From Klebsormidium nitens (Eukaryota; Plantae; Klebsormidiophyceae), in assembly GCA_000708835.1 (NCBI GenBank), contig DF237137.1, forward strand, positions 85,574 to 149,573: a stretch of DNA of 64,000 nt. The letters are read 5' to 3'. Of this stretch, positions 1 through 24,670 are shown one piece after another (position 1 is the stretch's first letter; every line of letters begins with the position of its first letter). The notes below the pieces were generated by a model. The model saw only the letters and a list, made by a program, of their open reading frames with translations. It did no database searches and was not told the DNA's origin. The translations under genes and the position numbers were made by a program.

Positions 1-109
1 TTGATTCTGTATTCGAGGTTGGAAGCCGCAGTTAAAAAACGTACCACCCTAGCAGCAGTTAAACCACCATAGCACTTATGACCATCACTCTTGTGTACAA
101 CGCAGGAAG

Positions 110-3100
110 ATGCTACCACTCGAGACCCACCCCAACTTCGCCGTTGACATCAAGCTTTTGACCGGAGAGCGCTTCAACGACACCCAGCGATCATGTCACG
201 GCTGTGGACAGAGGCTCTGGGCGGCAGTGGAGCGAGACGGCAGGCTAGTTCCCCATGGGATCCCCAAGCGCGAGACGGTCCTTAAAGAGGGGTTCATGGT
301 CTGTAGAGCAGATGCCTGTAAGTCCAAAACGACGGCGAAGCCTCGGAAGATCTTCTGTCTGGAGTGCCTCAGGGTTCGCGAGAGGGGGGGTGGCAGCATC
401 CCCTTTGAAGCTTGCTTCAAAACCCGACCCGACAAGAGCCTTGAGCAGCTCCTTCGGGAGTGTCTCCATTGCAAGCTGGGGCAGGGTGCGCAGTGCAAGA
501 TCCGGGAATCAGACGACCTTTCATGCCCAAGCGCCGTCTAGAACAGAGACCACCGCAGGGGCTCCAAGAAGCGCAAGAAAGATGATTCCCAGCGCGAGCT
601 CACCCCATGGCTCGGCGCTTGGAGGCATACTTTCGCCTGGCGAGACCAGTTTCTGACGAACCTCGTCCACCTCCCAAACCCCCATCAATACCTCTTCTTC
701 TACCCTGGGTCAGCCCCTCGCGATGCCGTCTTCCACACCATGCGGCTCAGCTCCCCAAGAATTGTGTACGAGTGGGCGTACCTCTGGCCTCTGCCGGAGT
801 TGCCCGCGCTCGAATCCATCTTCTTCATCCAGCCCGGGGGGGCGCACCAACCAAGGAAGTTGGCTTGTGATCCGATGCCGCCCCATCCAGTTAGGTTCTC
901 GTACCGCACTCAGCCCCCTTTTCACGGCGGCGTGCTCTTCTTCGCTCGAGCCCCCTGTCTGTACGCTTACTACGAAAAGGCTGCCGACCTGGTCCCGGAA
1001 GACGCACCACTCTCGCAGAAGCAGCGCCTGGCCGAAGACACGGTAAGCCTGCCACGTCAGCGAATGACTTGTAGGAGAAATGAAGGCATTTTTCCTGAGC
1101 AGATTCCCTGTTGGCACTATCGACAAGACAATCTTTGAGCATAGAAAAATACCGGTGAGATGACAAGAACTGCCATGTCGGTGCTTGATTGTTCACTCTG
1201 CCGAGGATCACCCCAAGGTGCTGGATGGTATGGTCATCTAGATTGTTTGAAAAGCATGCACGCAATGGGCGTGCCACTCACGAGCGCTGCTATCAGCCAC
1301 GCTGCTTGTCAAGGTCACATGGAGTGTGTGTTGTGGCTTCTAGATAACAATTGCCCAATGGAAGCAAATGCATGCACGATGGCTACGTCTGGGGGTCAAT
1401 TCCAAGTGCTTAAGTTGCTACGACGACACGGATGCCCTTGGGATCATTTGGCATTAAAAGAAGCCCTGTCCCGCAACAATTTTAAGATCCTGTATTGGGC
1501 GCTAGATAATGGATGTCCTTGGGACCCATGGTGTTGCCCACCGAACGTAACAGGATAAGATAAGGTTGCCTCTTATGCGGATAAGGCAGGGTCCGCGTCG
1601 TGTTCTTCTCGAAGTAAGTAGTTCTCTTCCTCCCTCTCTCCAGGTGAAAATCACGCGCGAGATCCCCGCAGAGGTGTACGAACGCGAGCTGCCCCTCCTC
1701 ATCGAGCAGTTTCGAGCGCATGCCCAACGAAAGACGCCGTTGCACACGGGGCGCCTGCCCGGGAACTTCATGCTCATCGCCAACATCCGACAGGACTGGC
1801 GTCGGGAAGAGTCGGGTCGGATTTTGAGGGCACGCGTGGTAGAGCCCGATCTCAGGGCGAAGAAGCACGGGGCGACAGCCAAGCGGCCCGACTGGCCGGT
1901 CCTCGTGCGCGTTGTGCCAGGGGCGGAGGCGACGCTTGACTGCTCGTGCGAGATGAAAGCGTCGGGTGGGCGGTGTTACCACAAGGGCGTCTTGGAGGCC
2001 CTGCACTCCGAGCTGCGCGACCTGCCCGTGTACTGTTCCGAGGACGCGCTGGTGCGTATCGGCGGCTCTGTCCGCAAGCCGACTTTCAAGGATCTGGACG
2101 GCACCGCGACGAAGGCGCTCGAGTGGAAGGTCAAAGACGCCGAGGGGGGCGGTTCTGCGGAGACCGTCACCTTCTACATCCATCACGCTGGGGCCTCTGG
2201 GACGCTCATCGCCGAACGGAAGGAGAGGAAAGGGGGGGCTGCTCTGGAGTGGGCGTGCGCCAAGTGCCCACTGGGCAAGACGGACCTGGAGGGGCGCTGC
2301 GTGCATTCCTATCGGAAGGCGGGGTTGACCAGCTTCGTGCAGCAGGGGGATGGGGTGGACGAGCCGTCGAGTCCCGAAGAGGTCTGGGGGCAAGACTATG
2401 GGGTCAAGCCGTACCCGAAGCTCGGCACGGCGACGGCGGTCGTCTGCACCGCCTGCCCGCGCGGCTACCGCAACCTGGCGGAGGACGCGAGCGAGACCCG
2501 GAGGCACGCCTGCCGCCACCTGGCCGAGTTTCCCCTTGCACAGCCCCCTCCGGAGCGCACGGCAGAGCAACTGCGCGAGCGGCCGATCCTGTACGGGCCG
2601 CACCTGCGGGTCGCGCACGTTTGCACCACGGCCTGCGACCTGAGGCCCTGCGGCCAGCTACCGCCCCGGCACGACAAGGTGAATCAGACCGCCGAGCACG
2701 ACGCGAGCGTGCAGGATATCTCAAGGTGGTGCGCCCTGGGCACATTCTGCCAGGACCGCCCTGCCAGCCCTCCCCCTTGCGGCGGGGGTTGGAAGCTAGG
2801 GTGGAAAAAGAAGGGGACGGGCAAGGCCCGGCTGTTGCGCCTCAACTCGCTGCAGGAGATCTCCCTTGGCACCTGGAAGTGCTACCCACGATGCCCGTCA
2901 AAGTGCGCGCTCAAGTTCGACGCTGCCAGCCTCGGGCTCTACTTCCTCTCTCCCAAGGTCCTGTGCACCCAGCCGGTGCTGAAGGCCCTCGAAGACGCCG
3001 TGTACAACAAGCACCAGTCATTCAAACAAGCTGCGCAGACGTGGGACGCAACCGCTCGCCGCACCTCTTCGCGTAAGTGCTCAACTCCCTAACCCACAGC

Positions 3101-3870
3101 CAATCAGAGCGCGCCACGTGGCATGGATGGAGGTTTGGCTTTCGCACGCTGCCGCTTAGGATGGAAGCGGAATAGGATGAAGTTGAATCTGTTCGAGTTG
3201 TTTCATGCGATTCGCCGCTGTCCTGATCTGACGCAGCTCCGTGCTTTGGCAGCTTGCAACGAGCGGAGGCTCGAGATTTCGACCAAGTGCGAGTCCAAGC
3301 CCATGCCGACGGGAGAGCCCAAGGGGGACGAGGAGACTGGGACGAAAGACTCAGGGACAGCAGCTTGGGGTGAGGTTCTTGCTCAGGTGTCTTTATTCCA
3401 ACACAAGAACAACCAAACGGTCGATCGCTCTGCCTAAGCCTAAGCAACGTAGCGGGATGCAGCGAAACTTGCACGATGTCTTAACGCCAAGTCGTCTGTG
3501 TCATGCAGATGCAATCCTGGGGGTGAGCGGCGTACGGTCGCTCTGCGAGGGAAGGGCACGTGACGCCATCATGCGATACATCCAGCACCTCGACGACCAC
3601 TCGGTCGAGCAGAAGATGCGCGAGCGCGAGGGTGCAGTGGAGGCCATGGCGTTGCCGCCTGTCCCACGCCGACAGCCCGACTTCGTGCCTGCAACGGGGA
3701 ACGAGAAGACGCCTTCCTTTGTACTCTTCGTGCCGCCCGCCGAACCCACTGAGGACCTGGTGGGGGCAAAGGTACAAAAGTACTTCCGGGAGAACCAGGC
3801 CAAACGGACGAAAGGTCGGACGTACCTGGGTGTGGTGACGGAGTATGTCTACGAAAAGCTCCAGTGGCGG
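110..3870 (+). CDS. Multi-exon Zn-finger protein: Cys-rich N-terminus, three SWIM-like CxC/CxxC...CxH motifs, CxC cluster like KDZ/HMGXB3 transposase N-termini, partial Tudor-like C-terminus; 3' end missing
   Basis: One frame runs 110-1042 with a single TAG at 539-541 (SCHGCGQR, FCLECL, CLHC). Phase-compatible splices 1042/1645, 3071/~3160, ~3370/~3510; last donor at 3871. Motifs DCSCEMKASGGRCYH, CAKCPLGKTDLEGRCVH, CTACPRG...ACRH, FDAASLGLYFLSPKVLCTQPVL, LVGAKVQKYF...YLGVVTEY. Domain names come from motif recognition only. Confidence 0.55.
1160..1558 (+). CDS. Short ankyrin-repeat ORF (GCPWD type) inside a predicted intron
   Basis: Four repeats: GHLDCLKSMHAMGVPL, GHMECVLWLLDNNCPM, GQFQVLKLLRRHGCPWD, NNFKILYWALDNGCPWD. 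Visibly lower GC than the flanking exons. Confidence 0.7.
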   Translation: MTRTAMSVLDCSLCRGSPQGAGWYGHLDCLKSMHAMGVPLTSAAISHAACQGHMECVLWLLDNNCPMEANACTMATSGGQFQVLKLLRRHGCPWDHLALKEALSRNNFKILYWALDNGCPWDPWCCPPNVTG

Positions 3871-3954
3871 GTAAGTTACTCTTGCTCACCTTGTATCGAA
3901 GCTTTTCTGGAGAAAGTACCAATGGGCTTGTAATAAATACATGATTACTAGTAT

Positions 3955-4992
3955 TCATGATTTTCCTCCTCATTATTATTCCGTTTTCCCCCCCGGTTAC
4001 CCCCCCTCCTCCGCCTCTTTTCCCTCATCCTCCCCGGGGCCCCCCTTTACCCCCCCCTTCATCCCCCTCCTCCGCCTCTTTTCCCTCATCCTCCCCGGGG
4101 CCCCCCTTTACCCCNNNNNNNNNNNNNNNNNNNNNNNNNNNNNNNNNNNNNNNNNNNNNNNNNNNNNNNNNNNNNNNNNNNNNNNNNNNNNNNNNNNNNN
4201 NNNNNNNNNNNNNNNNNNNNNNNNNNNNNNNNNNNNNNNNNNNNNNNNNNNNNNNNNNNNNNNNNNNNNNNNNNNNNNNNNNNNNNNNNNNNNNNNNNNN
4301 NNNNNNNNNNNNNNNNNNNNNNNNNNNNNNNNNNNNNNNNNNNNNNNNNNNNNNNNNNNNNNNNNNNNNNNNNNNNNNNNNNNNNNNNNNNNNNNNNNNN
4401 NNNNNNNNNNNNNNNNNNNNNNNNNNNNNNNNNNNNNNNNNNNNNNNNNNNNNNNNNNNNNNNNNNNNNNNNNNNNNNNNNNNNNNNNNNNNNNNNNNNN
4501 NNNNNNNNNNNNNNNNNNNNNNNNNNNNNNNNNNNNNNNNNNNNNNNNNNNNNNNNNNNNNNNNNNNNNNNNNNNNNNNNNNNNNNNNNNNNNNNNNNNN
4601 NNNNNNNNNNNNNNNNNNNNNNNNNNNNNNNNNNNNNNNNNNNNNNNNNNNNNNNNNNNNNNNNNNNNNNNNNNNNNNNNNNNNNNNNNNNNNNNNNNNN
4701 NNNNNNNNNNNNNNNNNNNNNNNNNNNNNNNNNNNNNNNNNNNNNNNNNNNNNNNNNNNNNNNNNNNNNNNNNNNNNNNNNNNNNNNNNNNNNNNNNNNN
4801 NNNNNNNNNNNNNNNNNNNNNNNNNNNNNNNNNNNNNNNNCCCTCATCCTCCCCGGGGGGGCCTATACCCCGGCCCTCATCCCCCTCCTCCGCCTCATTT
4901 TGTTCATCCACCGGGGAGGGCCTATAACCCCGGCCCTCACCGGTCTCCTCCGCCTCATTCCGCTCACTGAGAGAAAAGAGGAGGATGAGCAT
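3955..4992. repeat. Left subterminal tandem array (~61-bp C-rich unit, CCCTCATCCTCCCCGGGG...CTCCTCCGCCTC), containing an N gap
   Basis: Unit starts at 4022 and 4083 and resumes at 4841 after the gap. Its reverse complement matches the 19525-20592 array. Confidence 0.85.
4115..4840. other. Assembly gap (N run)
   Basis: Run of N. Confidence 1.
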
Positions 4993-5435
4993 GAAGAGAT
5001 GCATGCGACATGGTTTGTGCATAGGTAGCCTTCAGGGAGGACACTAGAGGCGCGGGGAAGACAGCATTGCCTTTGAGGAGCCATTTGGCAGCCCCTCTTC
5101 ATCATGGTTGCACTCTAGGATGTACTCAGACATTGTCATTCCGCGGCGCCCTGACGAAAGCCACCCCCCCCCCGGCCCCCCAGTCGCCGCAGCCATGTAG
5201 CTCAAGCACACAGCCAAGCGTGTGTGCATGTACAGTCACAACTTCAGCAAAAGCGGGACAGCATTCTGCATTGGGTCTTGGCGCAGTCAGGAGGGCCATT
5301 TGGCAGCCTCCATTATAAGCGTTGCAGTCTAGGTATCACGCAAAGCTTGTTAGTTTGCGGCGCCCTAACGAAAGCCACCCCCCCCCCGGCCCCCCAGTTG
5401 CCCAGGCCATGTAGCTCAAGGACCCAGCCCCGAAG

Positions 5436-8400
5436 ATGTCCAGCAAGAAACAGAAGCGCGGAGATCTGGGCGCGTCAGATCCGATGGGCAAGATCGACGC
5501 CCTTGCAGCGCCCCTGTGCCTGATGAGCTTCGTGCTTCTCCTGGACTGCCTGAAGCTTTTTCCGCAGCCCTTTCCAACCAGGACAGAGCTCATTGCCTCC
5601 ATTGTAAACATCACCCTGCCGCCGCACAGCAAGATAGATAGGGTCGCTGTTAAAGAACGTGATCGACAAGCTGAAGGGTGCTTCCGGGGACCTGTCACTT
5701 CTGAGCGGGCGCAAAGCGCCCAGCGGTCAGGGAGATTGCGCAGAATCAGTGCTTGCTCTTTGTTGCATTTCCGAAGCCCACAACATGCTTCCTGTGCTCC
5801 GAGCAATTGAGATGGGTGGACGAGTCAAAGGCCAGAAAGCCATTCTTTTTTCCGCACGACGGCCCGCCTGGCAAAGGGATCGTGCACGAGAAGTTCTGCC
5901 CTGCATGCAATGCTTTCTTTTCGAGAAGCTACTACTGTTCACCAGACTCTGAGGTGCGCCGGCCATACCCTGCTGCCCACGACAATGACACGTGGCTGGA
6001 GCTGACGGGGGAGACGCTGATCGGCAAGGAGCTGCTCCGGCGCCATGATGAACACCTGTGAGTGATCGGTCTCTCTGCGGTTATGCTGAGGCTTCAGGAT
6101 TACATTCGAAATTCAAGAAACATTCTGGTTTCCACAATCTTTCAGATTGTTGCTGGCTCTTCTCTCTAGTTCGAGTTTGAAAGGAAAGAGTGCTCATCCA
6201 TTGCTGCCAACTTGTGGCTGACTATTTGGGGACCATAAAGAAAGTGGCTTACAAGACGCAGCATCAGCCGTTGTTTCTGGCCTCAGTTGAGGACTCCAAG
6301 CAAATGCTAACATTGCTCCACAGCAGCATTCTGCCCAACAAGCGTTGATTCACTTGCATTCTCAGGTTTTGCAGGTTTGCATTGCTTCTTCGCTTTGAAG
6401 AAATGAAAAGGGATCAATCTTTCTGAAGGATGTGCCCGGAACAGAAACAGGGTGGTTCTCAGCAGATTATGCCATCGAGGCTGAGCGTTCGAACTATGAA
6501 GGTTGATCAGATCAGAAAGTTTGCCAGGATCTTGGACACGGTGCTTCCAGGGTTTCTGAAGTTTGAAAGTGTGTTTTGCAACTGCATGCGGGCACCCGTC
6601 AGTCTCCCGGTCAGCTTGTGTGGCTCAGGCTTGGCCTCCTCAATCTCTGCAGGTACTATATGCACGCCAGCTTCGTCTCTGCAGTTCGTGCTCACAATGC
6701 GTCCTTCGACCTTGACCGTTTCTCAGAAGAGCCTGCGGCAGCTCTCCAGCGGGTGCAGCGAAAACGGTCTCTAAGGGGGAGTCTAAACAGGCAACGATTC
6801 GAGCACGCATACTTTCAGTTCTGGGCCGTCCGATTCTGCCAGGAGCACAGCCCCAGCTTGCTAGAGGAACTAGATTTGCGTGACCCGATCGACAGCATCC
6901 TCAGCTGTCTCAACGATCCGTTCTGGTGCCACCTGCGAGACGAGGCTCTCGAGCACAGCAAGCGCTGCGAGAATGAGCTCTGCGGGAGGTATTGCCACTT
7001 CGACGGCAATGCCAAGGTCTTTCGGGCATGCTGTGCAAACAAGGAGGATGAGCTTTTCCAGACCGCAATCGGCCGGGTTGTGAAGGGTTGTCCCAGGACC
7101 CCACTCAAGAGCAAGAAGTACTGCCGCGTGCACCACGCAGGAGTGCCGGCCGGAAGTGCGGCAGTGCCGGGCGATGCGGGGGGCCAGCCGGGACAGCTGG
7201 GGCAGCCGGGACAGCTGGAAGCAATCCTGGGGCTAGGGGACGGTCAGATCGCCGAGGTCGGGGCGGGCGATGTGGAGGAGATCGATCTCCGGGACCTCGA
7301 CAGCGACGGCGAGTACGATGAGGGGGACGACGAGTCGGACGTTGAGGGAGGGGCCGAGGAAGAGCGAGGCGGTGCGGCGGGCGGGGGGGGTTCGGAAATC
7401 GAGGGTGCTGCTGCGTCCGCTGAGAAGTGGGACATGGATGCTGGGCCGGTGTCGCTGCGGACGCGGAGGAACAGGAAGCTGCTGCAGGAGGACGAGTCGC
7501 TGTACGAGGCGGAACGAATCGAGATGAGCATGCTCAAAAACGGGGTGAGCCTGCACAAGTTTGGACTACGTAACTTACCTGCTCAAGGTGCCTTCTTCTT
7601 AAATTCCTAGTGTAAAGAACCGTCAGGTTGCACGCATCTGCCTGAGAATTGAAACCGCACTTGGATGGGCAAGTGTTACAGTTTCTTTGGCAGTGAAGTA
7701 GGTTTCGTCCGTACAATCTATCACAGTCCTGGACGCCGTTGTCTGATGAGTTTGAGCTTAACTTAAGTTTCAGCTTAGCTGAAGTTTGTGGTCGCTTCAT
7801 CCGACCAGTAAGATACTTGGTATCAGGACGATAATCTCTAAGCAGAAGAGGCCAAAATTATTTGTGCTTCTGTGTTGGAAACTCTTGCGCTGAATCTTCC
7901 GAGGGGAGGTTCCAACGTAGAAGCTGTCAGCGCCTCTGCAGATCTTGCTATCTTGCAGGTTTAGGGTCTGCAAGGGTCTTTTCCTTTTCGCAGTAGTAAC
8001 TCGTCACGAACAGCTGAATCCCTTTAAAAATCTGCATGGTTCCAGGGCCTTTTTGGGTGAAGTACGTCCAACTTGCGTAGGCCTGCATATTGCAAACGTT
8101 AGTTTAGGGCAGGCATTTAGGGTTTCAGGGGTTCTCACGTGGGTCTGCAGATCGCCGTCATTGATTTAGTTTAACTTTTCAAGATTTTGAGGCACCTGCG
8201 AGCTACCCCGCTCTCTTCAGGTACCGATTTACCTGGTGAAGTGGAAAGGTTGCTCGGCCATGGAGAACACGTGGGAGCCAGAGGAGAACGTCACCGTCTT
8301 TGGCCGGGACCTGTTGGACGAGTACCTTCGCTCGCAGCCGCAAGGTAAAGCTGCCGGCATCGCGTCTGCAGGGCCTCCAAATGGGAGGGCTTCCCGTGCT

Positions 8401-11286
8401 CGGAACTTGCACGGCAGGAGAGATGTGGCTTGTAATCCTCCTCTCGAGTCGTGGATACAAACTCCCCCTTTCGAAGCTGCATGTTCTAGTTCTGCATCGA
8501 TGATTCTCCGCTAACTCGTGCTGCGAATTTTGCTCCGAGAAGCGCTGCATCCTGCGGCTCTGACGCGCTGCAAGCACTATGCTGCAGGCGACTTCTACAC
8601 CCGCGACCGCGAGGACCAGGTCCCGGATCCCGCGCCGGAGGCGGCTGCCGACAAGCCGCGCCGGCAGACCAAGCTGACAGCCTGCACCCCACGTACCGGC
8701 TCCGACGGTCGCGGCGTGACCGCCGGCACACTGGTCGCCTTCTGGGTGTGCGGGTACATGTTCCCCCCGCTAGAGCTCATCCTCTCGGAGTCCACCACCA
8801 TGGTGAGCAACGGGCAGAGGTTGCCGCCCCTGCCAGACTGGCGGCCCTTTGCTGCTTCCGGATTTTGAGCCCCGCTGTGCTCCCATGAGCCCCAAGACAT
8901 CTCCGTGTCCACACTTGTACACACCGGTTTCACCGTTCATAGTCTCGGTTTTTGATTCTTTACGAAGGGCAACGCACTACCTCCCCTTTCAACCGAGCCT
9001 GCTCTGAGTGCTGTACGGGTCAGTCAAGCCATCCCGCTCTACTAGTTGTTCCGCTCATGCTGTTTGCTTTGTGACTTTGCACAAAAAGGGGGACGCACCA
9101 CTGTCCTTTTCTCTCGAAATCGCCCCGAGCACAGCAAGGGCGAGTGAAGCGATCGGCGGTAAAATCCCGCTCTAGTTGTTCCGCTTCTAGTTTGTGCTTT
9201 CTGCTAAGTTTGCTTTCTTGGTTCCTCTCCGGTTGTCGTGCTCCTGCTTGCTCAATTCAGTTACTATGTGAGAGGAGACACGTTGCCACCCTGCCAGTTG
9301 AACCCGTTCTGAGCGCTGCCTTGGTCAGTCGAAACACCTCGCTCTAGTTGTTCCGCTTAGAGTTTTTTGTTCCGATCACAGCAAGGGCGAGTCAACCGAC
9401 TGGCGCTGAACTTTCCGCTCTGGTCGCTCAGCTTTAACTTTAACTTCCTGGTTTCTCGTAAGCTTGGGTCAATGTGGCACGGCACAAGTTATGCGGCAGC
9501 TTTCCGACCCATCATGGGCCGGCCAGTCTTTTGTGTCCGTCACTCTCCCCCGTTGCGCCCGGGTCTCAGGCTTGAACGTCCGTGTTGGCTTGGACAGCAG
9601 TCAACGTCCGATCCAATGACCCGTGCATGCCGCCCCCCTCCAGGTGCACCACTACATGACGCTCCTGTTTGCGCACGTGCGGCTGCCCGAGTTCATAGGC
9701 ATGGACGACATGTGCCACTGGGCACGGTTTGCGGCAAGCGGCGGGCGGACCGCGATGCATGACAAGACGCGCGAGTTCCACGAGGAGACGAAAAAAGTCG
9801 GTAAGGCACTCGACGAAACTTTTGTGCACTACTAGCTTTCAAAGATGCTACAAGTTCGTATCAATGTGTAGAGCAAGGTCGATCAGGTTTTGAGTCAGAA
9901 AGTGACCGCAGAAAGTCGGGTAAGGGTTAAACAGAAATGGGTTTTCGAGGCGTGGCACTGCCATGCCTGGTAAATCCGGGTTTAAAAGCAGCCGTTTCGC
10001 CTGACTTCAGAGCGAATGGAGCGAAACGAGGCGGGGGGTGAGTGGAGGGAACCTATAAGGGTAGGCAGAAGCCTTCAAGAAACTGTCCTTGTTGGAAGCA
10101 GAGACCCTGACGCGGGCACAAACAAAGCGTGTTTTAAAAGGTCGAGAAAAGACCACTAGAAAAGACCAGTAGCGCAATTCACGGAAATGACGGAAATTCG
10201 ATTCTAAGCTTGTACACGTCTGGTATGAAGGGTCCTGGATACGAGTGTCGAGTTTCGGAACCAAAAAGTCCGAAATCGGGTTAGAAAACCGGTTTGCGCA
10301 GAGGGTTGGTTTGTTGGGATGTTTGGCTCGGGGGTGCAATTTGGGGTTTTCAAACCAGGTTTGCAGCGCGAAAAACGCGCGGTCAAGGGTTCTGGGTGTG
10401 CGAACGCATTTGAGGGGTTTGAAATAATGGGGAAGGTGCGCTTTATGGCTCGGAAAGCTGTGTGGTTAGGTAATGCGAGCAGCGAAAAAGAAGGAAAGTA
10501 AAGTATCGAAACCAGGGTTTTCAAGGCCGGTTAAGCGCAGGTTAAGGGGAGGTTTTGGTATCGGTCAGATAGCGATAGTAGTACATACCTTCTGTTGGCA
10601 GCAGTCGCTGGCCATCGTCGTGGGGGCGCACGGACTGCCGGTGCGCCGTGCTCATGCGCCATCGAACCAAAGTGATATATATCTGCACTCGTTGCATTCA
10701 TTATGCATCGCTGACATCATCTTCCGTCTTCCCCCCCGCAGTGGACAAGTTCCACTTCAAGAAGAACCATGTGGGCCGGTGGTGCGCAGAACACACAAAC
10801 CCGTACAAGCATCCCGAGCTGGAGTCGGCGAACATGTCGGTGTGCGAACAGCGCTTTAAATGGTGGGGCCAGTTCCGAACATCTCTGAGGTGAGAACACT
10901 GTTCATGCGTCATTCGCTGGAGCAACTGGACAATGTTGTTTCATGCAAAGTGCTAGGAAAGTCGTACCAGAAAAGTCACATCAAGTATAGTCTGCCGCAG
11001 TGCGACAAACTTGCAGCTCCAAAGTGCCTATCGACCGTTCTTGCCGAGTCAAACTCGTACATCTAGAGAGCTGTTTATGTTCCGGTCTAGGTACATGTCC
11101 GAGCACCGCTTCCGCTTCATGATCCTGGTGATCACAAAGCTGGATCACATGAAGCGAAACGCGGAGCAAGACAGGCAGCTGCGGGCCCTCGCTGCGGCCC
11201 ACGCCGCCACCAGGACCACCAAGGACAGACAAGCTACCACTGCGACACCTACACTAGCGAATCAGGTGATCGAACTCTCGGTCTAG
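5436..11286 (+). CDS. KDZ (Kyakuja-Dileera-Zisupton)-type transposase with CxC Zn clusters and an inserted chromodomain
   Basis: Approximate exons 5436-5725, 5811-6058, 6653-7544, 8221-8344, 8589-8801, 9644-9800, 10742-10889, 11090-11286; the junctions from 6058 onward are phase-compatible. Motifs KFCPACNAFFSRSYY (CxC5-like), HFDGNAKVFRACC (D at 7002), GCPRTPLKSKKYCRVH, TAGTLVAFWVCG...LSES, GMDDMCH (9704), VDKFHFKKNH...WC, NMSVCEQRFKW (E at 10846). Confidence 0.88.
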
Positions 11287-11529
11287 TCTAGTCCATGTCC
11301 ATCTCCCGGCCATTTGAAGCGGATGCTGACTTGTTGCTCTTGTCAGAGTTGTCGGAGTCCGATTCGTCTTGCTGCACAGCAACCAAGCAAGAAGGTATCA
11401 GTGACTCGCGGTAGAAGGGATTCGGATCCGTAATCTTGACGTAAGCAGGCCCGCAGGAGATTCTAGATAAGTTGCACCGACTTCCGATTCACTTTCAAGG
11501 ACTTTGCTTAGGCCAGCAGCTTTCGCAAC

Positions 11530-14456
11530 TTACGCGCGCTTGCGGGAGCGCGCCGGAAGGAACGTGTCCAGAGTCATGCCGATCCGGTTCAGGTTGTTGA
11601 TCAGCATGATGTTCTCGTCCTCGGTCTTCGGAATCATCTTGATGAAGACCTCTTGTTTTTGTTTGCTCGACGACAGCTTGACCATCTCCTTGACGGACCC
11701 GAAGCAGTGCACAGAATCGTCGTCATGCGACGAGATGTAGTCAAACACACTCTTGATCTGTGCATTGTTGCCCTGCGTCCTCTTCTTGGAGACCTCGATT
11801 CTTCCGATGGTCTCGTCAGGGAAGGCCCGAAAGAGTCGCCTTGCCTTCTGGTCCAGGGGGGTCTGCAAGAGGCAAAAGGGTTTTCTTTGAGAGCCGCATG
11901 CCAGCTTCCAAAACTCTCAACACGGATGCAGCCGCACAAGAGGTTGCAATAATACATGCACGCCTGTACATGATTTGAGAAGGAGGAACTTTCAGACTGT
12001 AGAATCGATAAATGTCGAGTATGCTTACCAACTCGTTGGCAACGTCATCTTCTTCTTCGAGATCCTCGTCATCGTCTTCGTTCGCATCCTCGTCAGGGTA
12101 ACCGAGCTGCTTCCAGCCAAGGACCTTACTGCACACCTTGATCACGTCCTGGTCGTTCTCAAACTCAATCCGTTGCCTCGTGGTCAGGTTGACAAAGTTC
12201 CAAGCCTGCCGCACGTCTTCGTCGGTGATCAAGAAAGCCTCAGGATGATCGAGCAGAGCCGGGTAAGACGGATCCAGAACGAGGTTCATTGCTCTGAAGA
12301 TAGCTGAGATTTGGAGCACCTCGCCCTTGGCCTTTGAGATGATCCCTGCACGAAAAGCGCGTCCTTGAGTCCTTCGCCTTTCTGATCTGCTTCCTGGTGT
12401 CCGCGACTGTAAATACTCATACATCCCGTCTGCTGGGAGCAATTATCTTCAGAGAGCCGTGAAGATTCTCTGCTTTCAAAAGCCGTGCTCACCTGCTTTA
12501 TGGAGGAGGTCCTTGAGGTACAGCTCACGCAGCACTTTCTGGATGCTGTCAAAGCCCTGGCCAAAAACGTCACGGGCACTCCCTGCCAGCTTGAAGATCG
12601 TGACATCCTTGTCGTCGTCCAGACTATGCGTCAACCAGTAAAGCCGGTACATCAGCTGCACATCAAGAAACAGGAAACAATCAACAGCGAGACAATGGAG
12701 GAAGCAATTCCTAAGTCTGTCTAAGGAGTTTTGTCGATTTCGAATTCTGCGAACCAACTGCTGAGCACGAGTTGCTCATTCGTCACCAGAAGCATCAGGG
12801 TCTTACCTTCTGCATGAGGTCGTTGTCCTGATCGATGATTTGCTGCTCTTCTTCACCGATGCACAACTGGCCTGCACAGTGGTTTCATTATGATCAGATT
12901 CGACTCGCCTTGCAGGAACGCACAACCTGACATCCCAAGGACCAATTCCAGGATCGGAGACCATCAAACAGCTGAGAGAGTCCAAACCAAATACTTACTG
13001 AAGTCGGGGAACTCCGGGGGGGGGAAAGCCATTTGGTAGCGGTTCATCAATCCATCATTCGGAGTCTTGCTCAGCTCCCTCTGGAGAGGCTCCGGCTGCG
13101 TGAACCTGCCAATGCACACGTGTGTATACTCGCAGGTTTTGCTCTCATTGTTGTCATTGACCAGCTCTCGCGTCCAGCTGCTTCCCCCTTTAAGTTGCAA
13201 GGCTCGAACCCTGTCGTTGTTCCCCTTCTTGTACGCATCCAACATCTCGAAGAACTGGTGAGCCTCTTCGAAGAGAAGCATCCCTGAATGATCTCGAGCC
13301 TTGAGGAGCATCTGGAACAGTCTTTCGAAATTGACCTGCGCAAACATTACATCTTTTTATGCAGGTGTACACCAGTGCTCGTTGATTGATACCAAGCCTG
13401 CTTCAGGATTGAAACCAGCTGTACTCGCAGTCTTGATTGATTCGTCTACATCTGGCCTGCGTAGATTGACAACCATTTTGCCAATGATCAAGAATAGAAT
13501 CCTTGTATCCTGCCTTTGAATCATATTCCTCACGCATGAAACCGGAAACATGCACCAAATGATCGGATCAGACAAGAGAGTCGCATGCAGATTCGAATCT
13601 GGCAATGCTCCAAGATGATGCCCTACAAAATGATCAGTAGCTGCAGACGTGTAATTTGAGCAACTTGACGGAATGATCTATAAATATACAAATGATCAGA
13701 CTATTCATGAGACTATGACAGTCGTTCAATATGCACATGACAATCTATTTCGAGCTGAGAGATTGGATTGAGCAGATATTGATGCACGCGCAATCATCAA
13801 TCTCGACAAGACGAACTCAAGCAATCAAACTGAAAGATTCGACTCACCGCCCCGTCGCACTTCACTTTCAGAAAGCTGATTTCAGACAGGAGCTTTTCGA
13901 GCTCAGCAGATCCTTCTCTGTATACCTCGCGATCGACGCTCTTCAATACATGTTCCATAATCTCGTCGTTGATGAGGCGCTCCACCACATCAATGTTAGT
14001 GCTGATTTTGTGGTACGCCTGGAACTTGCCAAAACCGCTAGGGCCGACACAAAACCCCCAGTGAATGAGATTACTCTTCCATTCCAATCCCTCAACCTCA
14101 ACACGAGAGTTTGGTCCCAGAAAGTATGAAGCACAAGACGTTAGTGGTACCATCAGCATCCAGGAGCTAACACCAATTCGCTTTCCCATTCTCTGGAGCA
14201 TATTCAGCGCCTCACTTGGAAACGATGTCTTTGCGTTTTCTTCATTGATGATCAAGCAGACCGCTCGACTCTGGTTAGCAATGGAGCTTTGGTCTCCAAA
14301 GCTTGATCGTTTTGGAGGCATCCTGTCAGCTGCTAGGTCCTGCGGTTTGGAATGAACGTAGTTGCGAAACAGAAGAAGCGCCTCGGAAAAAGATCTCCAG
14401 CTGATCAGCACATTCAAATATACCCTGGCAAGCTCTCGGCCGTCCAAACCAGACAA
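11530..14456 (-). CDS. DUF3987/YfjI-like P-loop ATPase (putative replicative helicase), multi-exon; start may lie upstream at 15041
   Basis: FPSEALNML...EWKSNLIHWGFCVGPSGFGKFQA (Walker A ~14025-14045), LLFEEAHQFF (Walker B), LQLKGGSSWTR, FTQPEPL, DGLMNRY (Arg-finger-like), GIISKAKGEVLQISAIF, ITDEDVRQAWNFV. This order of blocks is typical of DUF3987. Confidence 0.75.
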
Positions 14457-15260
14457 AACCTGATCAAAGTAGAAATCAAATGCGAAACTATTGAAAAGGC
14501 GCCACTAGATGCTCTTTAGCTTGCAATGCAAATAGATTGTCTCCCCTCACAAGTGTTTCCTTGGAACAAATTCCAATTGTGATCACCACGGTCTCACCTA
14601 GGAGTCAAATGATAGCTAGCTCGAAATGAGTCGACGCAATTTATCTTGAGAAAGCTTTATCTGAGCTTCACTGACTCAGCTTGCCTTTGAATTTGAATTT
14701 TCGATTGCAAAACCCCCGAGGTATGAGCGAGCGACCGCCGGCCGCACCGCGGTGCCCGGTACGTTACACTGGCTCGATCACTGAGCCGAGCCTATAGACT
14801 AGAGTAGCTATCAGCTAGGCTATACCGTCCGGCTACTGGCCGGCGGCCGCGCGACCCGTCCTGTCGCGACCGACGATTTGAAACTGTATATATCATTTAG
14901 ATCGGCAATGCGTCGGGAAGCCACGGTGCGTTGTTGACGCAAGTCGTTGGCCAAAGTGGTCAGTCGACTGCAAGCGTCGTCCCGTGGCGGTTTGCTCGAG
15001 TTCGAATCCTCGACCGGACAGTTTTTTTTCCCCCAATCCACATGATTAATTGGTTGATCCTCATATTTTTCAGCCCTAGGTCCTAGGAACCATCAAGAAC
15101 ACCTTATTCGACATCCCCCTAGATCTTGGAAAAACTTCAGAGCTGTTTTGAGCAAGGCGAGACGCTTTGCATGTGTGCGCCTCTCACTAAAGCTACCGCG
15201 TTTCTTGCCATTTTCGAGTGACTGTGCTGCCATCATCTAGACCGTGACAAGAACAGAGAA

Positions 15261-18200
15261 ATGGAGCCAGGTCGAAAGCGGCCGGAGTCATGCGTCAGGC
15301 CGAGCATTCGTGAGGCGATGCGCAGGAATCGCGACCAGATCATATCAGACATGCCCGGCTTCGAGTTGCTCAGCGAGCCTCTCGTCATGAAATACTTCAA
15401 GACGTTGGCCGAGTTGTTCAACTTTGCAGGCTCCTACTTCGATTCGGAAAGGCTGTTGCTTTTGGCTAGACAAGACCCAGAATTTGGGAACTACAGCTAC
15501 TACGCGGTCACGATTGATGCTTTTCTCAAAAGGTGAGCCTGCAACAAGCCAGTGCAATTCGTTGTGGTTGAGACACGTGATGAAGAACACCTCGAACCTG
15601 ATCTTTGAGCCAATCGATTGTCAATGTAGTTTTAGGACTCTAAATCAGTATCACAGCTCAGGCTTCCATTATCACGATCATCCATCAATCGAGTTGCGCA
15701 TACTAATCAGTGACGATGATCAGCTGACAGTACCAAATGCCTATTTCAACGCAGCTTCCAGGCCAATAGGCTTCAATGGCAACACACTTACGAAATCTTC
15801 CAAACGGTGAGCCCTCAATATGCTCTGAATCTTTCATGGCAGGTCCTAAACCTTGCAGAATCTATCTTCCAAGCCGCGTATCAATCCCATGTTGAAAGAT
15901 TTTCGAACGCGACTCTTTCCTTTCTGCGATCTCGCTGACTTTCCTCTTCGAAATTGCAGGGGCGGCGATGTCACTTGTTTTTTGACCTGGAGTACCGCAA
16001 GGCTTGCAACCCCAACCTGTCGGCACATGATCTGGTGGATACAGTGCTCTTGATCACCGAAGAGATCTGTCGAGAAACATATGGAACGGGGATCTGGAGA
16101 GAACGCATCGTTGAATTAGACGCCTCGTATGCCAGTAAGCATACCTGAACCATCACTGAATCATTCAAAATGTGGAAGAGTAGAGTCGTCACTTTCAATC
16201 TGGATGTTCGCAAACAAGATGGATTCGCTGGTGAATACATTGGTTCGACATGCACTTCATTGGCAAGGATCATCATTGAACGCTCTCGTTTTTTGCAGGC
16301 AAGTTCAGCCGGCACATCATAGTTCCCGTTTACGGCAGGTGCTTCGCAAACGTCCATGAAGACATGAAGTGCTTCGTTGACAAGGTCAGTAGACATCGCC
16401 ATACGTTTCAAGCTTATGCTGAAGGTTGAATCTCATTCACCCTCAGTCACTTGTCTGCAGATTGAAGTCGATTCTTTTTTAACGAAACACCTGCCTTTTG
16501 CTGCTTTCTAGATATGCGCAAAGATCTACCAGCTGGCGCAATCAGGGGACGAGTCTGCGAAGCGACTACTGGTAAACCAAGGACCGAATCTGCCTCAGAC
16601 TCTGGTCATTGACCATTCAGTTTACACAAAGACAAGACACTTCCGAACCATCTTCTCCACCAAACAGCAAGGCCCAGACGTTCCGTTCACCCCGACCTGC
16701 AGATTGTTCACCGAACAGGTAAGGTCTATACATGGAAGAGCCGGGCTAACTCTGCTGGTTTCCCAGGCCTCAGGAAACGACACGAACGAAAGATCCAACG
16801 TAACTTGCTTTTGGAAGCAGCTTGCGGAAACAATTTGTCCATCGACTCACATGTATCTTACTGTCTCCGTCTTGCAGAACCTGACTCATCAAATCACGCA
16901 CTCGTTCGCCTCTCTGGTGCCTTTGTCTAGTACACCACTTCCCTCACTTCAAACGCCGGAGGTGACCCCGACACCCTTCTCCAATTCCAGATCGTCTCCC
17001 AATAAGCAGAGTAGCAAAATCAATCTAGGCTTAGTTCTGAAGTCTGAAGAGCAGTATGACGCGTCTGGATATCATTACTTACAATAATTCGGCTGCTCTG
17101 CAGGACCATTCTGCTCAAAGTGACAAGGCGACACCAACCGGAACATCTGCAGTGAGCACAAACGGGTCAATTCACATCAGAAGCCTGGAGGACTTCGTGA
17201 CGGCGTCCGTTCGAGTTTTCTCACGATCACTATCACGATCACGAGGTTCGGCCAAAAAAGTCCACTGCACTGTCATCTCTTAATGCTTCCAGTTTTCATG
17301 CATCCCATCCTCCTACGCAATCTGCACACACAAGCTTAACTCGAAGAATTTAGGTTCACCTCTCAGCCAGCCTTTTTAAACACGCAGGCGCGAGCATAAC
17401 GTCCAGAATCATCATCAACAAGGCTTTTCTATCGTACTCGTTTAAAGGCTTCAAGTTCTGCCAAAACGTCAACCGAAACCATACGCAGAACAACGGTGAG
17501 CCCCAAGAACAAAACACTCCTCGCACATAAGCTTCGGCTTTCCTGTACCTGAAAACCCCCGGCTTGCTTCTTTATTCTCGCAGTCATTGAGCCCCATCCC
17601 ACGAGTCTCCTTCAGACAACAAACTCCGCGTTTAAAACACTCTTCTTGCAGTCTACATGGTAGTGGACCTGGTTCAAGGAGTATTCTACCAAAAATGCCA
17701 CGCCCCTGCATGCCAAGGTGAGATCATCAGCTGCTAGCAGCAACGCAATAAACGTGCAAAGCATTTAAACATAAGAATGCCTTGATCTAGTGCTGAGCAC
17801 ATTATTCAGAACTGAAAAGACACTAAACAACTTTTGCCTTGCAGCAATAGGATACAGGTCTCCGTTCAAGTCGCTGCCAAACAGTCTGGTCGAAGAAGCG
17901 AGGGCGGCGGTTTGCAAAGCTCTGGGGCAAAGCTCACCTGCGAAGTCTCCTGCGTGGGGGGAGCTCGAGGAAGTAGACCCAGCTTTTACTTCCGCCGTGA
18001 GTTGAAACGATCCACGAATTGAATCAGTTCTTGATTTCTTACGATTTCCATTCTTATTCGTCGGTACACAACAGGCGAGTTGCATCGAACTGTGTTTTAG
18101 TACTTTTCGTGAGTTGAGCAAATCTTGTCTTTTCCCATGCAGGCCCTGCAAGTTCTACACGCGCTCGAAGATCGCCCCACGAAAAAGGCGAAGGCAGAGC

Positions 18201-19090
18201 AAGCCCCGGAGACACAGGTGGGAAATCCGGTTCCCGCCATACTCGATCGTGTGATTCAGCTTCTTTCAAGAACATACAAGTCACACGCATCGAAAACAAG
18301 TTTCCCAGGTGCTCGCGCTGAGGCCAAACATGATTTGCAGACAAGGCCACTCCCCGCCGAGCTGGAAGTCCAAAATGCGGCCGCTTCAACCCCAAGCAGA
18401 TTGATGCCCCGAACTCCGGACGAAATCAGCTTTCCTGCATATCTCACGGTGAGCGGTGCCAATTCATGTTATCTGACCAAACATTGAAGTACAGAGAGTC
18501 TATTCTTTTCCGGGTGGAAAACCTTTGAATCTGGTTAATGCACATTGGGTTAAATCTAAACCATATTTCACACCGCGACTTCATAGAGTTTCGGATACGA
18601 CGCTTCAGACTAACAATGCCCTTTCTTTACTGACAATGCCCATCTTTCAAACGGCTCGTCCCCTGCTGACGTCAGCGCCTGGAACGCTGACAGCGGAGCC
18701 TCTCAGATCCAGAAAGCGGCATCAAAAGTTTCTCGTGGTACAGCTTGAAACACGTATGGAGCACAAGACCAACAGCCTTTCGCAACCTTTCAGGTGGACA
18801 GGGCACGCGCGAATGTCGACTCGGAGGCGGCCGGGGGAGGGCCAGCGGAATGGGGCGCTGATGCGCGGCCGCTCGAGACGGCCCCGGGCGACGCTGACGT
18901 CAGCGAGCAGTTGTTGAACGAGACCGGGCAGGGAAACGGGCACGCGGTCGGGGGAGAGCCCTCGGGGTGGGGCGCCGATGCGCGCGAGCAGCCCACGCAG
19001 CCGCTGACGGACGCCGCAGCGGAGGAGGGCGGCGACACGCAGCCCCTCGAGCCGGCCCTGGACGAAGCTAATGCGAGCGTATTGGGCTAA
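15261..19090 (+). CDS. PRIMPOL: PrimPol-type archaeo-eukaryotic primase-polymerase with C-terminal UL52-like Zn finger
   Basis: Spliced frame gives HTYEIFQT|GRRCHLFFDLEY (motif I DxE, 15984-15992), LDASYA|SKFSRHII (motif II SxH, ~16300), IDHSVYTKTRHFRTIFSTK (motif III), FKFCQNVNRNHTQNN and VYMVVDLVQGVFYQKCHAPAC (C-H-C-C finger, ~17450-17715), then GYRSPFKSLP. The 3' exons after ~18000 are uncertain. Confidence 0.9.
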
Positions 19091-19524
19091 TTGCCAATTG
19101 CAGATGGGTAGTTCGAGCGTTGATGATGTCGGCGAATGTGGTTACATCTTTGTCAGGACCTATTGAGACACAGAGTTGAGATTCAGGTCAGCGGCGCTCT
19201 ACAGTTGCAGTCTTTCTATACGTGGGAAACATTTCCGACGCCTTGCTATAAGTCCGCCTTGACGCCTGTGCGACCTGTGTAGAACTCGCTGGAAGATATA
19301 TACCAAGCCTGTTAACGTTCCGATTCGATCAGAGTGTGGAAAATATATGTACATGCTTTAAAGAGACGCTTCCAGAGCGAAACAGTATTCTGTCTTTGGT
19401 TACTGGAAACACATGAGAAGACCGTACCCAGAATCCGGCATGATCATGAATAAGTCACGATGAATCAAAGCTGTGCTTGGCCAACAAACGCAAGAATGAA
19501 GCTTGTCAGGATATATGCAAGTCA

Positions 19525-20592
19525 ATCTCATCATTCTCCTCGTTCTCCTCAATGAGAAGAATGAGGCGGAGGAGAACGATGAGGGCCGGGGTAAAGGCGC
19601 CCCCGAAGGATGAGGATGTGAGGCATAATGAACGGGAAAGCATTTGCACCCGTACTCATCCTCCTCCTCATTCTCCTCAATGAGAAGAATGAGGCGGAGG
19701 AGAGCGATGAGGGCGGGGGTAGAGGCGACCCCGAGGATGAGAATGAGTGCGCAAAATGAACGGAAGAATATTCTTACCCGCCCTCATCGTCCTCCTCATT
19801 CCCCTNNNNNNNNNNNNNNNNNNNNNNNNNNNNNNNNNNNNNNNNNNNNNNNNNNNNNNNNNNNNNNNNNNNNNNNNNNNNNNNNNNNNNNNNNNNNNNN
19901 NNNNNNNNNNNNNNNNNNNNNNNNNNNNNNNNNNNNNNNNNNNNNNNNNNNNNNNNNNNNNNNNNNNNNNNNNNNNNNNNNNNNNNNNNNNNNNNNNNNN
20001 NNNNNNNNNNNNNNNNNNNNNNNNNNNNNNNNNNNNNNNNNNNNNNNNNNNNNNNNNNNNNNNNNNNNNNNNNNNNNNNNNNNNNNNNNNNNNNNNNNNN
20101 NNNNNNNNNNNNNNNNNNNNNNNNNNNNNNNNNNNNNNNNNNNNNNNNNNNNNNNNNNNNNNNNNNNNNNNNNNNNNNNNNNNNNNNNNNNNNNNNNNNN
20201 NNNNNNNNNNNNNNNNNNNNNNNNNNNNNNNNNNNNNNNNNNNNNNNNNNNNNNNNNNNNNNNNNNNNNNNNNNNNNNNNNNNNNNNNNNNNNNNNNNNN
20301 NCTTACCCGCCCTCATCGTCCTCCTCATTCCCCTCAATGAGAAGAATGAGGCGGAGGAGGACGATGAGGGCGGGGGTAGAGGCGCCCCCAAGAATGAGCA
20401 AAGTGAGACGGATGAGAAAGATGAGTATGAGGCCTACAATGAAAAGGTGAACGGAAGGATGAGGAAAGTGAATCTTTCCGTCTCACTGGATGAGAGAAAT
20501 GAGGAGTTCAGTGAGGAGAATGAGAAAATTCATCCCGGCTCCGGGTGAGTTCACCCGGGACTAGGATGAAAGGAGGAGGATGAGGATGAGAC
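19525..20592. repeat. Right subterminal tandem array (~128-bp unit with internal inverted repeat), containing an N gap
   Basis: CTCAATGAGAAGAATGAGGCGG recurs at 19548 and 19676. Perfect 21-bp hairpin arms at 20306-20326 and 20354-20374. Inverted relative to the left array. Confidence 0.85.
19806..20301. other. Assembly gap (N run)
   Basis: Run of N. Confidence 1.
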
Positions 20593-20628
20593 CCGAATCA
20601 TGTAATTCTTACATCTCCATTGGTACTT

Positions 20629-20840
20629 CGTGCATTGTCAGGCAGCAAGACCGAGCTTCGCTTGGGTTCAATAACCACACTATGCGTCCTGCAAAACTCT
20701 GCCGTAACAAAGTTGTGAGTCGCGCCCGAATCAAAGAGAATGTTCGCTTCGGATCCTGCAGCTTTGCATCCAAAAAGCATGCGTAGAGAACTCGACTTTG
20801 CAGCAGCACTGATAACGTGAATTGCACCTCTCGTCAAAAC
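20629..20840 (-). pseudogene. Ty3/gypsy retrotransposon aspartic protease remnant
   Basis: MLFGCKAAGSEANILFDSGATHNFVTAEFC...VLLPDN carries the DSG catalytic motif. No RT, RNase H or integrase is seen. Confidence 0.7.
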
Positions 20841-21949
20841 CGCTTCCCTTGAGGCTCTGTTAGGACCTGGCCCGTTTACTGTCTAGACTCCCTTTGATCA
20901 CTTTGATTCGCGAATCTAACCTTTTTTCACGGCGGATACACCACTTTTTGCATGGCTGATTAATCGGCTCAGCTGCGCCGGGCAACTGCAGGTGAATGCA
21001 TCTTGACCCCCGGGGCGGGACCCCGGTTAGTAGGTTATGCAGTCCTCACAAAAATTGCAGCTGCGTGAGCCAAGCGCTGGTCGGTTCTTCGGAGGCCAGA
21101 TTGCATATTACTCAAAGTCCATCTAATAGTCGAAGTCATGTCAAGGTTTCATGTTTAGCGTATAAGGTTGCGCGTCGACCGAAAATCTACCACCCCCCAC
21201 TTTGATGTTGTCAGACCACGTGGTTCTGGAAACCCTGGTTTCGGCAATGGTTTGCAGCAAACCCTCCACATCTGTGCGCCCTATATTACCCATTTCTGCA
21301 CCAAAATGCTCTATCCAAAGCACCTGGGCAATGGCCATGAGTGGTGGCCATTGCCGGCAAGGCTTCTTTGAGCAAAGAAGATGCTCATTTGATACTTATA
21401 GGCGACACAATCACCCCAGTGTTGCAAACCTCTTACAAACCCATATTTATGAAAAACATGCCTCTGATTGGCTCAGAAACCTGGGATGACCTCGGAGGTT
21501 TTCGGTCGACGCGCAACCTGACCTTTGACAACCGACATAACGTCTCATCCACTTGTTCTTTGAAGTGACCGGCTTCCTTTTTTAGCTCAATTGCAGACGT
21601 ACGATCCCGAAGTCAATCACGAGGTTCATGTCTTCTCTTTGGGTGCATCGATTTGTGATGTATGTGCTGATTAAGCCATTTGGCTGAAGGTTGGCATATT
21701 TGTCGCAAATTTTGTCCTCGATCAGACGTCAAGTTCATTAAATTGTATAACCGGTTGACTCGATTATAAAACAAGCTTCCTTTGAGTTTCAAATTCACAT
21801 GTTACGCAGTCAATTGCAATTGCGCGAGCCGCAGAGCCAGCCCGAGTATCTCCCACCCCCTTCGAGCCCACATTTGGACTTACCACCAAATTAATATACT
21901 CAGAACTATATTCAGAACTACCCTCCGAGCGACTGTCCATGTTGGATGA

Positions 21950-24188: not shown

Positions 24189-24670
24189 GGCGCCTTAGAC
24201 AAGGAGAGAGAAGCGTGTGTTAAAAAGGTTTCAGCAACTGAGAAGGGAAAACTTTTCGGAAGATGCCAGGACTCTGACGACCATCATTCACAATACAATG
24301 CAATCCTGGCTGCAATACCAGCACTGGCCAGTGTCTTGAATTTAAAATTATGCTTTCTTCAGCTGCAGATGAACGGAGGGCATGCTTCAACGCGCGCGCG
24401 GCGCGGCTCGATTCTTCGAGGCTTAGTAAGTTAGTAGGCGGCAGGCTTCGACTAAACCACGGGCGAACGCGAAACCTGACGGTCCCTCCATGCCCGGGCG
24501 CGTGCTCGCGCTTGCTTGACCTGCAATGCAATGGCGAAGCGCGGGGTGGGCCGCAGCTAAAACATGGCAGCAATTGCCAGCGTTGGACGCAGAAGGCGCC
24601 TGCAGTCCACGTAAAACTCTTTGGTCCTAGCCAAAGCCCGTCTTGTGTGTCCTTTCTTCGATCCTCTCCA

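Follow-up and report, generated by a model that had tools for sequence, protein, structure and literature searches.

The question raised by this locus is whether a eukaryotic DNA transposon brings along its own enzymes for priming and unwinding DNA. The stretch analysed, referred to here as the window, is 64,000 nucleotides (nt) of scaffold DF237137.1, positions 85571-149570, from the streptophyte alga Klebsormidium nitens (GCA_000708835.1), and the segment of interest, at 3914-20628, carries genes for a DDE transposase, a DUF3987 helicase-like ATPase, and a primase-polymerase (PrimPol). To our knowledge, eukaryotic cut-and-paste transposons are thought to depend on the host for replication and repair, and only Polintons (polymerase B) and Helitrons (Rep/helicase) bring enzymes of their own. 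The 16.7-kb segment is interpreted here as one copy of a large (about 14-17 kb) DNA transposon family of Klebsormidium and its relatives. It is very likely that the family is real and that the three genes are integral parts of it; the full reading, in which the PrimPol and the ATPase would also provide a primosome, is considered probable, with appreciable room for doubt.

The segment is bounded by an inverted repeat pair of 33 nt, complementary at 28 of 33 positions (85 %), with the left terminal inverted repeat (TIR) on the transposase side at 3914-3946 (+ strand) and the right TIR on the PrimPol side at 20596-20628 (- strand). When the 64 kb were scanned, a terminal motif with 17 specified bases was found at these two ends only (0.11 expected by chance). 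The inner part of the window terminus is also found in a paralogous copy, L001, at the corresponding position (near 6744-6790). Subterminal tandem arrays lie inside both termini. The left array (3985-4990) has units of about 61 nt, at 3985-4114 and 4844-4963, and the right array (19520-20398) has a period of 128 nt, running over 19520-19805 and resuming at 20305-20398. Units from the left and the right are 72-85 % complementary (I1-I9), and the arrays are therefore inverted relative to each other. Three gene models are annotated within the span. The inverted termini and inverted arrays enclosing three genes, from which the original prediction started, are borne out.

Each array contains an assembly gap, a run of N at 4115-4840 (726 nt) on the left and at 19806-20301 (496 nt) on the right, with units of the same repeat in the same orientation on either side. 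Around the first gap these belong to the 61-nt family (3985-4106 and 4864-4924; 64-68 % identity across the gap), and around the second to a 94/128-nt family (19520-19805 and 20305-20398; 90 % identity across the gap). Because of these same-orientation units, and because neither gap crosses a conserved exon in the window copy, the gaps look like collapsed repeats. The letters beside the gaps fit continuity, and a scaffolding join of two copies of the same family may fit them as well.

All three genes are split by introns and were analysed as open pieces, without joining. The transposase gene (5433-11289, + strand; 3′ end from the genome annotation) is collinear with L001, L002, L004, L005, L007, and L010. 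Its catalytic codons are where they had been predicted, with D at 7002, D at 9704, and E at 10846, and the triad is kept in every related copy that retains that segment. An H-x4-H motif immediately precedes the E. The Cys-cluster exon (5705-6058) has four invariant Cys in two C-x2-C pairs among six copies. Between the first and second catalytic Asp is a chromodomain, split by an intron over about 7500-8350 (Pfam Chromo, E 3.5e-10, for the open reading frame (ORF) at 8191-8511), which is present in all six of the collinear loci and suggests chromatin-targeted insertion by a DNA transposon. No stop was seen inside the conserved exon pieces of the transposase, the ATPase, or the PrimPol in the window copy. 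Upstream of the transposase start, at 5107-5429, repeat comparison identified two direct repeats of 109 nt (82 %).

The assignment of this transposase to KDZ (Kyakuja-Dileera-Zisupton), as proposed in the original prediction, is only partly upheld. The motif layout of DDE triad and H-x4-H agrees with it, but the Pfam KDZ and CxC models match neither the transposase ORF pieces nor protein P0001 (for KDZ, up to E 10), which counts against the assignment. Likewise, the precomputed Pfam matches on annotated transposase paralogues of 502-682 amino acids (aa) are to Chromo only, with no KDZ and no CxC, and when 27 ORF pieces of the element were compared with Pfam the transposase was matched by Chromo alone. 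An hhalign comparison of the Cys cluster with a CxC4-like ORF in the left flank was negative. The transposase exons are short and a divergent KDZ member could still be present despite the negative Pfam result. H(3-4)H is also found in CMC elements, and the D/D/E plus H-x4-H layout is therefore not exclusive to KDZ (PMC12730594). Since the KDZ and CxC profiles do not match, the element is not filed as a KDZ member; the term KDZ-like describes the motif layout, and any affiliation is tentative.

Convergent with the transposase gene is the ATPase gene (11533-14324, - strand). Its product, P0003 (KFL_001880190, 562 aa), matches Pfam DUF3987 (PF13148) at 54.5 bits (E 1.4e-14; cut-off 27), as expected from the earlier description of a DUF3987-like ATPase. 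Against the same cut-off, P0005 scores 72.3 bits and P0002 39.5 bits. The Walker B motif and the following core are encoded in the exon at 12967-13356, and the ATPase core is conserved across lineages. A weak 'DNA helicase' match for P0002 is the sole result from PHROGs. Comparison of the ATPase profile with PDB sequences gave noise only, and Pfam found no PriCT domain in the element.

The PrimPol gene (15258-19093, + strand; annotated model 391 aa, about 15321-19093) is on the transposase strand and contains, in open exon pieces, all three AEP motifs and the zinc finger that had been attributed to it. The N-terminal exon (15258-15533) is followed by the motif I exon (DxE, 15966-16139), by motif II (SxH, 16295-16390), by motif III (16572-16670), and by a zinc finger in two Cys/His pieces (17432-17500 and 17654-17725). 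The motif I exon alone matches human PRIMPOL (5l2x) at E 4.8e-4, and with a profile of this exon from four lineages human PRIMPOL (5l2x, 7jk1) is the only significant match in PDB, at E 9.4e-10. The finger exon (33 aa) resembles Pfam Herpes_UL52 at E 0.0018 and 18.6 bits, just below the cut-off of 21, and the annotated PrimPol model of L005 has a precomputed weak match to a UL52-like finger. Motifs I-III are conserved in L005 and L006; the first half of the zinc finger is conserved in L005, and both halves in L006. A search for homologous proteins with a 191-aa PrimPol ORF found nothing, the exons being short and the search confined to a range of protein lengths.

The ATPase and PrimPol genes diverge from a shared upstream region at 14325-15257. 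Between their starts, a non-coding block at 14886-15010 is 86 % identical to L002, which is above the identity of the neighbouring coding DNA. This block could be a shared promoter or other cis element, and the head-to-head layout suggests that a bidirectional promoter is located between the two genes.

Protein searches and context look-ups placed these genes, arranged alike (transposase, ATPase on the opposite strand, PrimPol on the transposase strand), at further K. nitens loci, and genes of the set were also found on environmental contigs. The arrangement is complete in L005 and partial in L002, L004, L006, L007, L009, and L010. Between L002 (DF238230.1, a scaffold of 8.6 kb) and window 5433-15555 there is collinearity at 70-92 % nt identity; the scaffold runs through the transposase and an ATPase from which one internal stretch is deleted, and ends after the first exon of the PrimPol. 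In L005 (DF237628.1) the PrimPol, ATPase, and transposase are ordered and oriented as in the window, with aa identities of 39.5 %, 37.1 %, and 43.1 %, respectively. L005 has TIRs and inverted arrays of its own, at 5311-5872 and 17781-19117, which are unrelated in sequence to those of the window and contain an assembly gap. It is flanked by a perfect 8/8 direct repeat, about 5259-19214, with the boundary uncertain by a few bases (8/8 arises in 1.15 % of random position pairs). The trio is therefore not confined to the window, nor is the window PrimPol a sole, syntenic host copy, which together would have spoken against the element as first described.

The remaining loci are less complete. In L001 the transposase is truncated, with one or more stops; this copy also has an array, and a terminus that shares the inner part of the window TIR. 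L004 has a partial ATPase convergent with the transposase, at least one stop, and a 122-nt array, without a PrimPol, and L006 has the PrimPol/ATPase pair head to head, without a transposase and with at least one stop. On contigs of JGI metagenome 3300060284 (L007 and L010) the ATPase is convergent with the transposase, on a Logan contig (L009; SRR23617210) PrimPol and ATPase are head to head at 32-36 % identity, and on an ENA contig (L013) the ATPase has no PrimPol upstream. The flanks differ at every locus of the family. A second copy was looked for within the window and not found. Scans of metagenomes with the ATPase alignment and with the transposase exon alignment yielded nothing that was confirmed by tblastn, and scans of viral contigs with the ATPase and one PrimPol exon, which reach only close relatives, found nothing. 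An insect match, P0024, was dropped as a repetitive, artefact-like protein.

Two of these loci show further features. At 6990-8140 in L001, the subterminal array contains an insertion of about 1.1 kb that resembles a miniature inverted-repeat transposable element, with short inverted ends and inverted 21-nt tandem arrays. At 76-2017 in L006, on the PrimPol side of the PrimPol/ATPase pair that lacks a KDZ-like transposase, there is a gene with a Pfam Plavaka transposase match, which may adjoin the pair by chance or may represent another carrier of it.

Comparison of the window with L002 gives ratios of non-synonymous to synonymous substitution (dN/dS) of 0.16 for the transposase (908 codons), 0.14 for the ATPase (524 codons), and 0.09 for the PrimPol (93 codons), values obtained from the alignable exon pieces alone and at a dS of 1-2.5, which is near saturation. 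Read in this way, the sequences show all three genes to be under apparent purifying selection. In each comparison, divergence is about equally deep for the three genes, which fits long co-inheritance rather than recent capture. Because order and orientation recur at 37-43 % identity, the catalytic motifs are conserved, and dN/dS is low, the PrimPol and the ATPase are judged from their sequences to be integral, selected parts of the element and not enclosed host genes. An interpretation of the locus as a host gene cluster was rejected, the family being multi-copy.

A number of observations weigh against this reading, beside the near-saturation of dS. No target-site duplication (TSD) is present at the window copy, where the best 8-mer agrees at 6/8 on a grid of +/-12 and is no better than chance, and the two flanks of this copy do not continue each other. 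In the absence of a TSD, and with both ends beyond assembly gaps, the termini in the window may therefore have been joined from different copies. No PrimPol adjoins the ATPase in L004, L010, or L013. No near-identical copy was seen, the closest being 70-92 % identical in nt sequence, and there is therefore no sign of recent activity. The ATPase also presents difficulties. Of the P-loop ATPase described originally, Walker B and the following core are present, but Walker A in the window copy has one non-canonical substitution, while it is canonical in all relatives that keep the segment; the ATPase of the window copy may therefore be inactive, going by this residue. The AlphaFold2 model of P0003 has a mean predicted local distance difference test score (pLDDT) of 70, with the core below 50 and thus of low confidence, and a Foldseek comparison of the model with PDB gave nothing at E <= 0.001. 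In the bacterial DUF3987 helicase AgaPH, Walker A mutants lose helicase activity (PMC11724360). Given its non-canonical Walker A, the window copy may depend on other copies.

From the arrangement of the element a mode of action can be proposed. The subterminal arrays probably hold multiple binding sites for the transposase, which would cut at the ends and insert the element, an 8-bp target duplication being seen in L005, and which the chromodomain probably steers to marked chromatin. The PrimPol and the ATPase would be transcribed head to head from the shared upstream region and, by analogy, would form the element's own primosome, with the ATPase as helicase and the PrimPol priming and extending DNA. 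The analogy is drawn because AgaPH is a 5′-3′ helicase that binds the adjacent PrimPol, AgaPP, the pair being proposed as the replicase of a bacterial mobile element and to have also a role in repair (PMC11724360), and because the IS-excision enhancer (IEE) of Escherichia coli provides a second bacterial parallel (PMC9943667). The pair would copy the element around transposition, acting on an excised or nicked copy, or would fill and rejoin the breaks left by transposition. The self-synthesizing or replication-assisted mode put forward originally is likewise a proposal by analogy. A replicative role, as against repair, is a tentative choice that we place somewhat short of an even chance.

Instead of replicating the element, the PrimPol/helicase pair could serve as a repair helper only, bridging and filling, through synthesis mediated by microhomology, either the break at the donor site or the 8-nt gaps at the target, with no extrachromosomal replication. 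Such a role has been proposed for IEE, a bacterial AEP-helicase protein that promotes excision of insertion sequences (IS), needs both its AEP and helicase domains to join 3′ overhangs, and is functionally coupled to transposases (PMC9943667). Repair activities are also known for the DUF3987-associated AgaPP (PMC11724360), and no processive polymerase was identified by Pfam among the ORFs of the element. However, the helicase of IEE is of superfamily 2 (SF2) and not DUF3987, IEE is not carried by the IS itself, and enzymes for joining ends and filling gaps are available in a eukaryotic host anyway. Three lineages retain the priming-type zinc finger of the PrimPol, a domain that would be superfluous if ends were merely filled. 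Because of this conservation, replication around transposition, itself held only tentatively, is favoured over help in repair alone, which is regarded as rather unlikely. The PrimPol and ATPase might have no role in transposition at all, as passengers that represent a captured host pair or a nested mobile module. In keeping with this, the PrimPol is of the cellular eukaryotic type, both genes have introns, the pair is without a transposase in L006 and L009, the ATPase is without a PrimPol in L004, L010, and L013, and additional ORFs and TET/JBP cargo have been described in KDZ elements (PMC11343200, PMC12730594). Against passengers weighs the fixed order and orientation in two lineages that are 37-43 % identical, in both of which the arrays enclose the whole trio, and so do the similar divergence and low dN/dS of all three genes. 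No internal inverted repeats bracket the PrimPol/ATPase pair, and because L006, L009, and L013 represent truncated copies or the ends of contigs, a gene missing there is weak evidence. Passenger status is considered improbable.

Two other explanations concern the integrity and the nature of the element. It is conceivable that the 16.7-kb unit is partly an assembly artefact and not real at this locus, gap scaffolding having joined termini and arrays of different copies. The N gaps, of estimated length, lie inward of both ends, the copy in the window has unrelated flanks and no TSD, the family is multi-copy in the K. nitens genome, and the units across the first gap are only 64-68 % alike, all of which could be expected from such joining. 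The outer pieces nevertheless carry the repeat family of the inner pieces in the same orientation, together with matching TIRs, and L005 independently shows the same end-to-end architecture. We consider it unlikely that the unit is artefactual to this extent, and the concern would touch the boundaries of the window copy alone, not the family or the gene set. An origin as a piece of an endogenous virus or of a Polinton-like element, in place of a transposase-driven transposon, is very improbable. The PrimPol belongs to an AEP clade shared with large DNA viruses and herpesviruses, the zinc finger resembles Pfam Herpes_UL52, and primase-helicase modules are typical of small DNA viruses. Pfam gave no match to a capsid, packaging ATPase, protein-primed polymerase B (pPolB), or integrase in the ORFs of the element or its surroundings, however, the viral-contig scans for close relatives were empty, and the conserved DDE transposase, TIRs, and arrays account for mobility.

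The surroundings of the element were also inspected. To its left is a gene at 1551-3930 (+ strand) with a weak CxC4-like Cys cluster (Pfam CxC4, E 1.5e-4, below the cut-off), which lies outside the element. In the public annotation a single model of 1527 aa joins this gene to the transposase (1551-11289), across the left TIR and the first gap. No similarity to window 1-3913 was found at any related locus and, because none of these shares the left-flank part, the 1527-aa model is probably chimeric. To the right, likewise outside the element, is a fragment of a retroelement aspartyl protease (20601-20882, - strand; Pfam RVP_2, E 1.9e-6), the ORF of which overlaps the TIR by 28 bases; a continuation of this protease was sought on the left flank, and there was none. 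Further right, at 21953-24191 and 24278-25900, are host genes: a mitoNEET-type zf-CDGSH gene, a MYND-finger ORF, and an Abhydrolase_2 ORF. With ordinary host genes adjoining, the element is in gene space rather than in a region made up of repeats alone. In window 1-26000, scans for Rfam families and tRNAs gave no matches. Elsewhere in the window, 28639-35071 contains three paralogous coding segments on both strands, unrelated to the element, with 40-59 % aa identity, and there are short local tandem duplications at 40375-40576 and 46538-46749 (64 and 76 nt; 83-87 % identity).

The gene set of a DDE transposase, a DUF3987 ATPase, and a PrimPol appears to be new as an accessory module of a DDE transposon, and no published description was found. 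In full-text literature searches there was no paper tying KDZ, Zisupton, or any eukaryotic DDE transposon to a primase-polymerase, and full-text searches for DUF3987 returned bacteria, archaea, or their viruses only; the absence of a prior account, as originally stated, thus holds in these searches. Retention of a primase-polymerase and a helicase-like ATPase, under apparent selection and through deep divergence, in one lineage of DDE transposons suggests an undescribed replication-coupled or repair-coupled form of transposition. It also points to a route by which a PrimPol of cellular/viral type and a helicase of bacterial-mobile-element type would have come to work together in a streptophyte alga, and provides a concrete sequence family for studying the movement of primase-helicase modules among viruses, plasmids, and transposons. 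With its conserved chromodomain, the transposase is also a probable example of chromatin-targeted insertion among DNA transposons. More speculatively, the family could join Polintons and Helitrons as a third and independent type of self-replicating DNA transposon in eukaryotes, in which the transposase would release the element, the primosome would be loaded at the subterminal arrays, and the element would be copied with host polymerases and reinserted. This proposal is doubtful at present; if true, a cut-and-paste transposon would contain a plasmid-like or virus-like replication stage.

Among transposons that carry genes for DNA synthesis together with their own recombinase, Polintons (Mavericks) and casposons are the obvious comparison. 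They carry a protein-primed family B polymerase, with capsid genes in Polintons or Cas1 in casposons. In the element ORFs of about 100 aa or more there is no Pfam match to a protein-primed polymerase B, retroviral-type integrase, capsid, or packaging genes, and none of the element ORFs matches an HUH Rep endonuclease (Helitron/Replitron), in accordance with what had been reported for this segment. The element differs from Polintons and casposons in having a primase-polymerase and helicase with a DDE transposase, and no polymerase B, capsid, or Cas1 was seen. Helitrons and AcademH are eukaryotic DNA transposons with a helicase-type ATPase of their own, and are similar to the element in this. 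Their helicases belong to other superfamilies and come without a primase, and Helitrons use an HUH nuclease; the Helitron protein is Rep/Hel (PMC12730594). Identities as a Polinton, casposon, or Helitron were rejected, the defining genes not having been found in the element.

The transposase and overall structure are closest in layout to KDZ elements, such as Zisupton of fish and KDZ1-3 of Cryptococcus, which are 9-11 kb, have TIRs and 8-bp TSDs, and carry extra ORFs (PMC11343200, PMC12730594). The element resembles them in being large, in its TIRs, in an apparent 8-bp TSD (here in L005 only), in an N-terminal Cys cluster followed by a DDE domain, and in the carriage of extra ORFs, which in fungi include TET/JBP (PMC11343200, PMC12730594). 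It differs in its length of 14-17 kb, the internal chromodomain, the long subterminal tandem arrays, a transposase that is unrecognized by the Pfam KDZ and CxC models, and the PrimPol and DUF3987 ATPase as accessory genes, of which no report was found for KDZ.

For the accessory pair the parallels are bacterial. In IEE, AEP and helicase domains work with DDE transposases, through microhomology end joining (PMC9943667); in this bacterial protein, however, the two domains are fused in one chain, the helicase is SF2, and the gene is not located within the IS whose excision it promotes. The AgaPP/AgaPH integrative elements of bacteria resemble the K. nitens element in that an AEP primase-polymerase and a P-loop protein of the DUF3987 type are encoded next to each other on mobile DNA. 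Helicase activity and PrimPol binding have been shown for the bacterial AgaPH, whereas the K. nitens ATPase is known here as a sequence. The bacterial elements have an integrase, a BT4734-like bacterial AEP, and a PriCT-DUF3987 architecture; in K. nitens there is a DDE transposase, a PrimPol of the eukaryotic type, and a DUF3987 ATPase with no PriCT match, all encoded by intron-bearing genes in a eukaryotic host.

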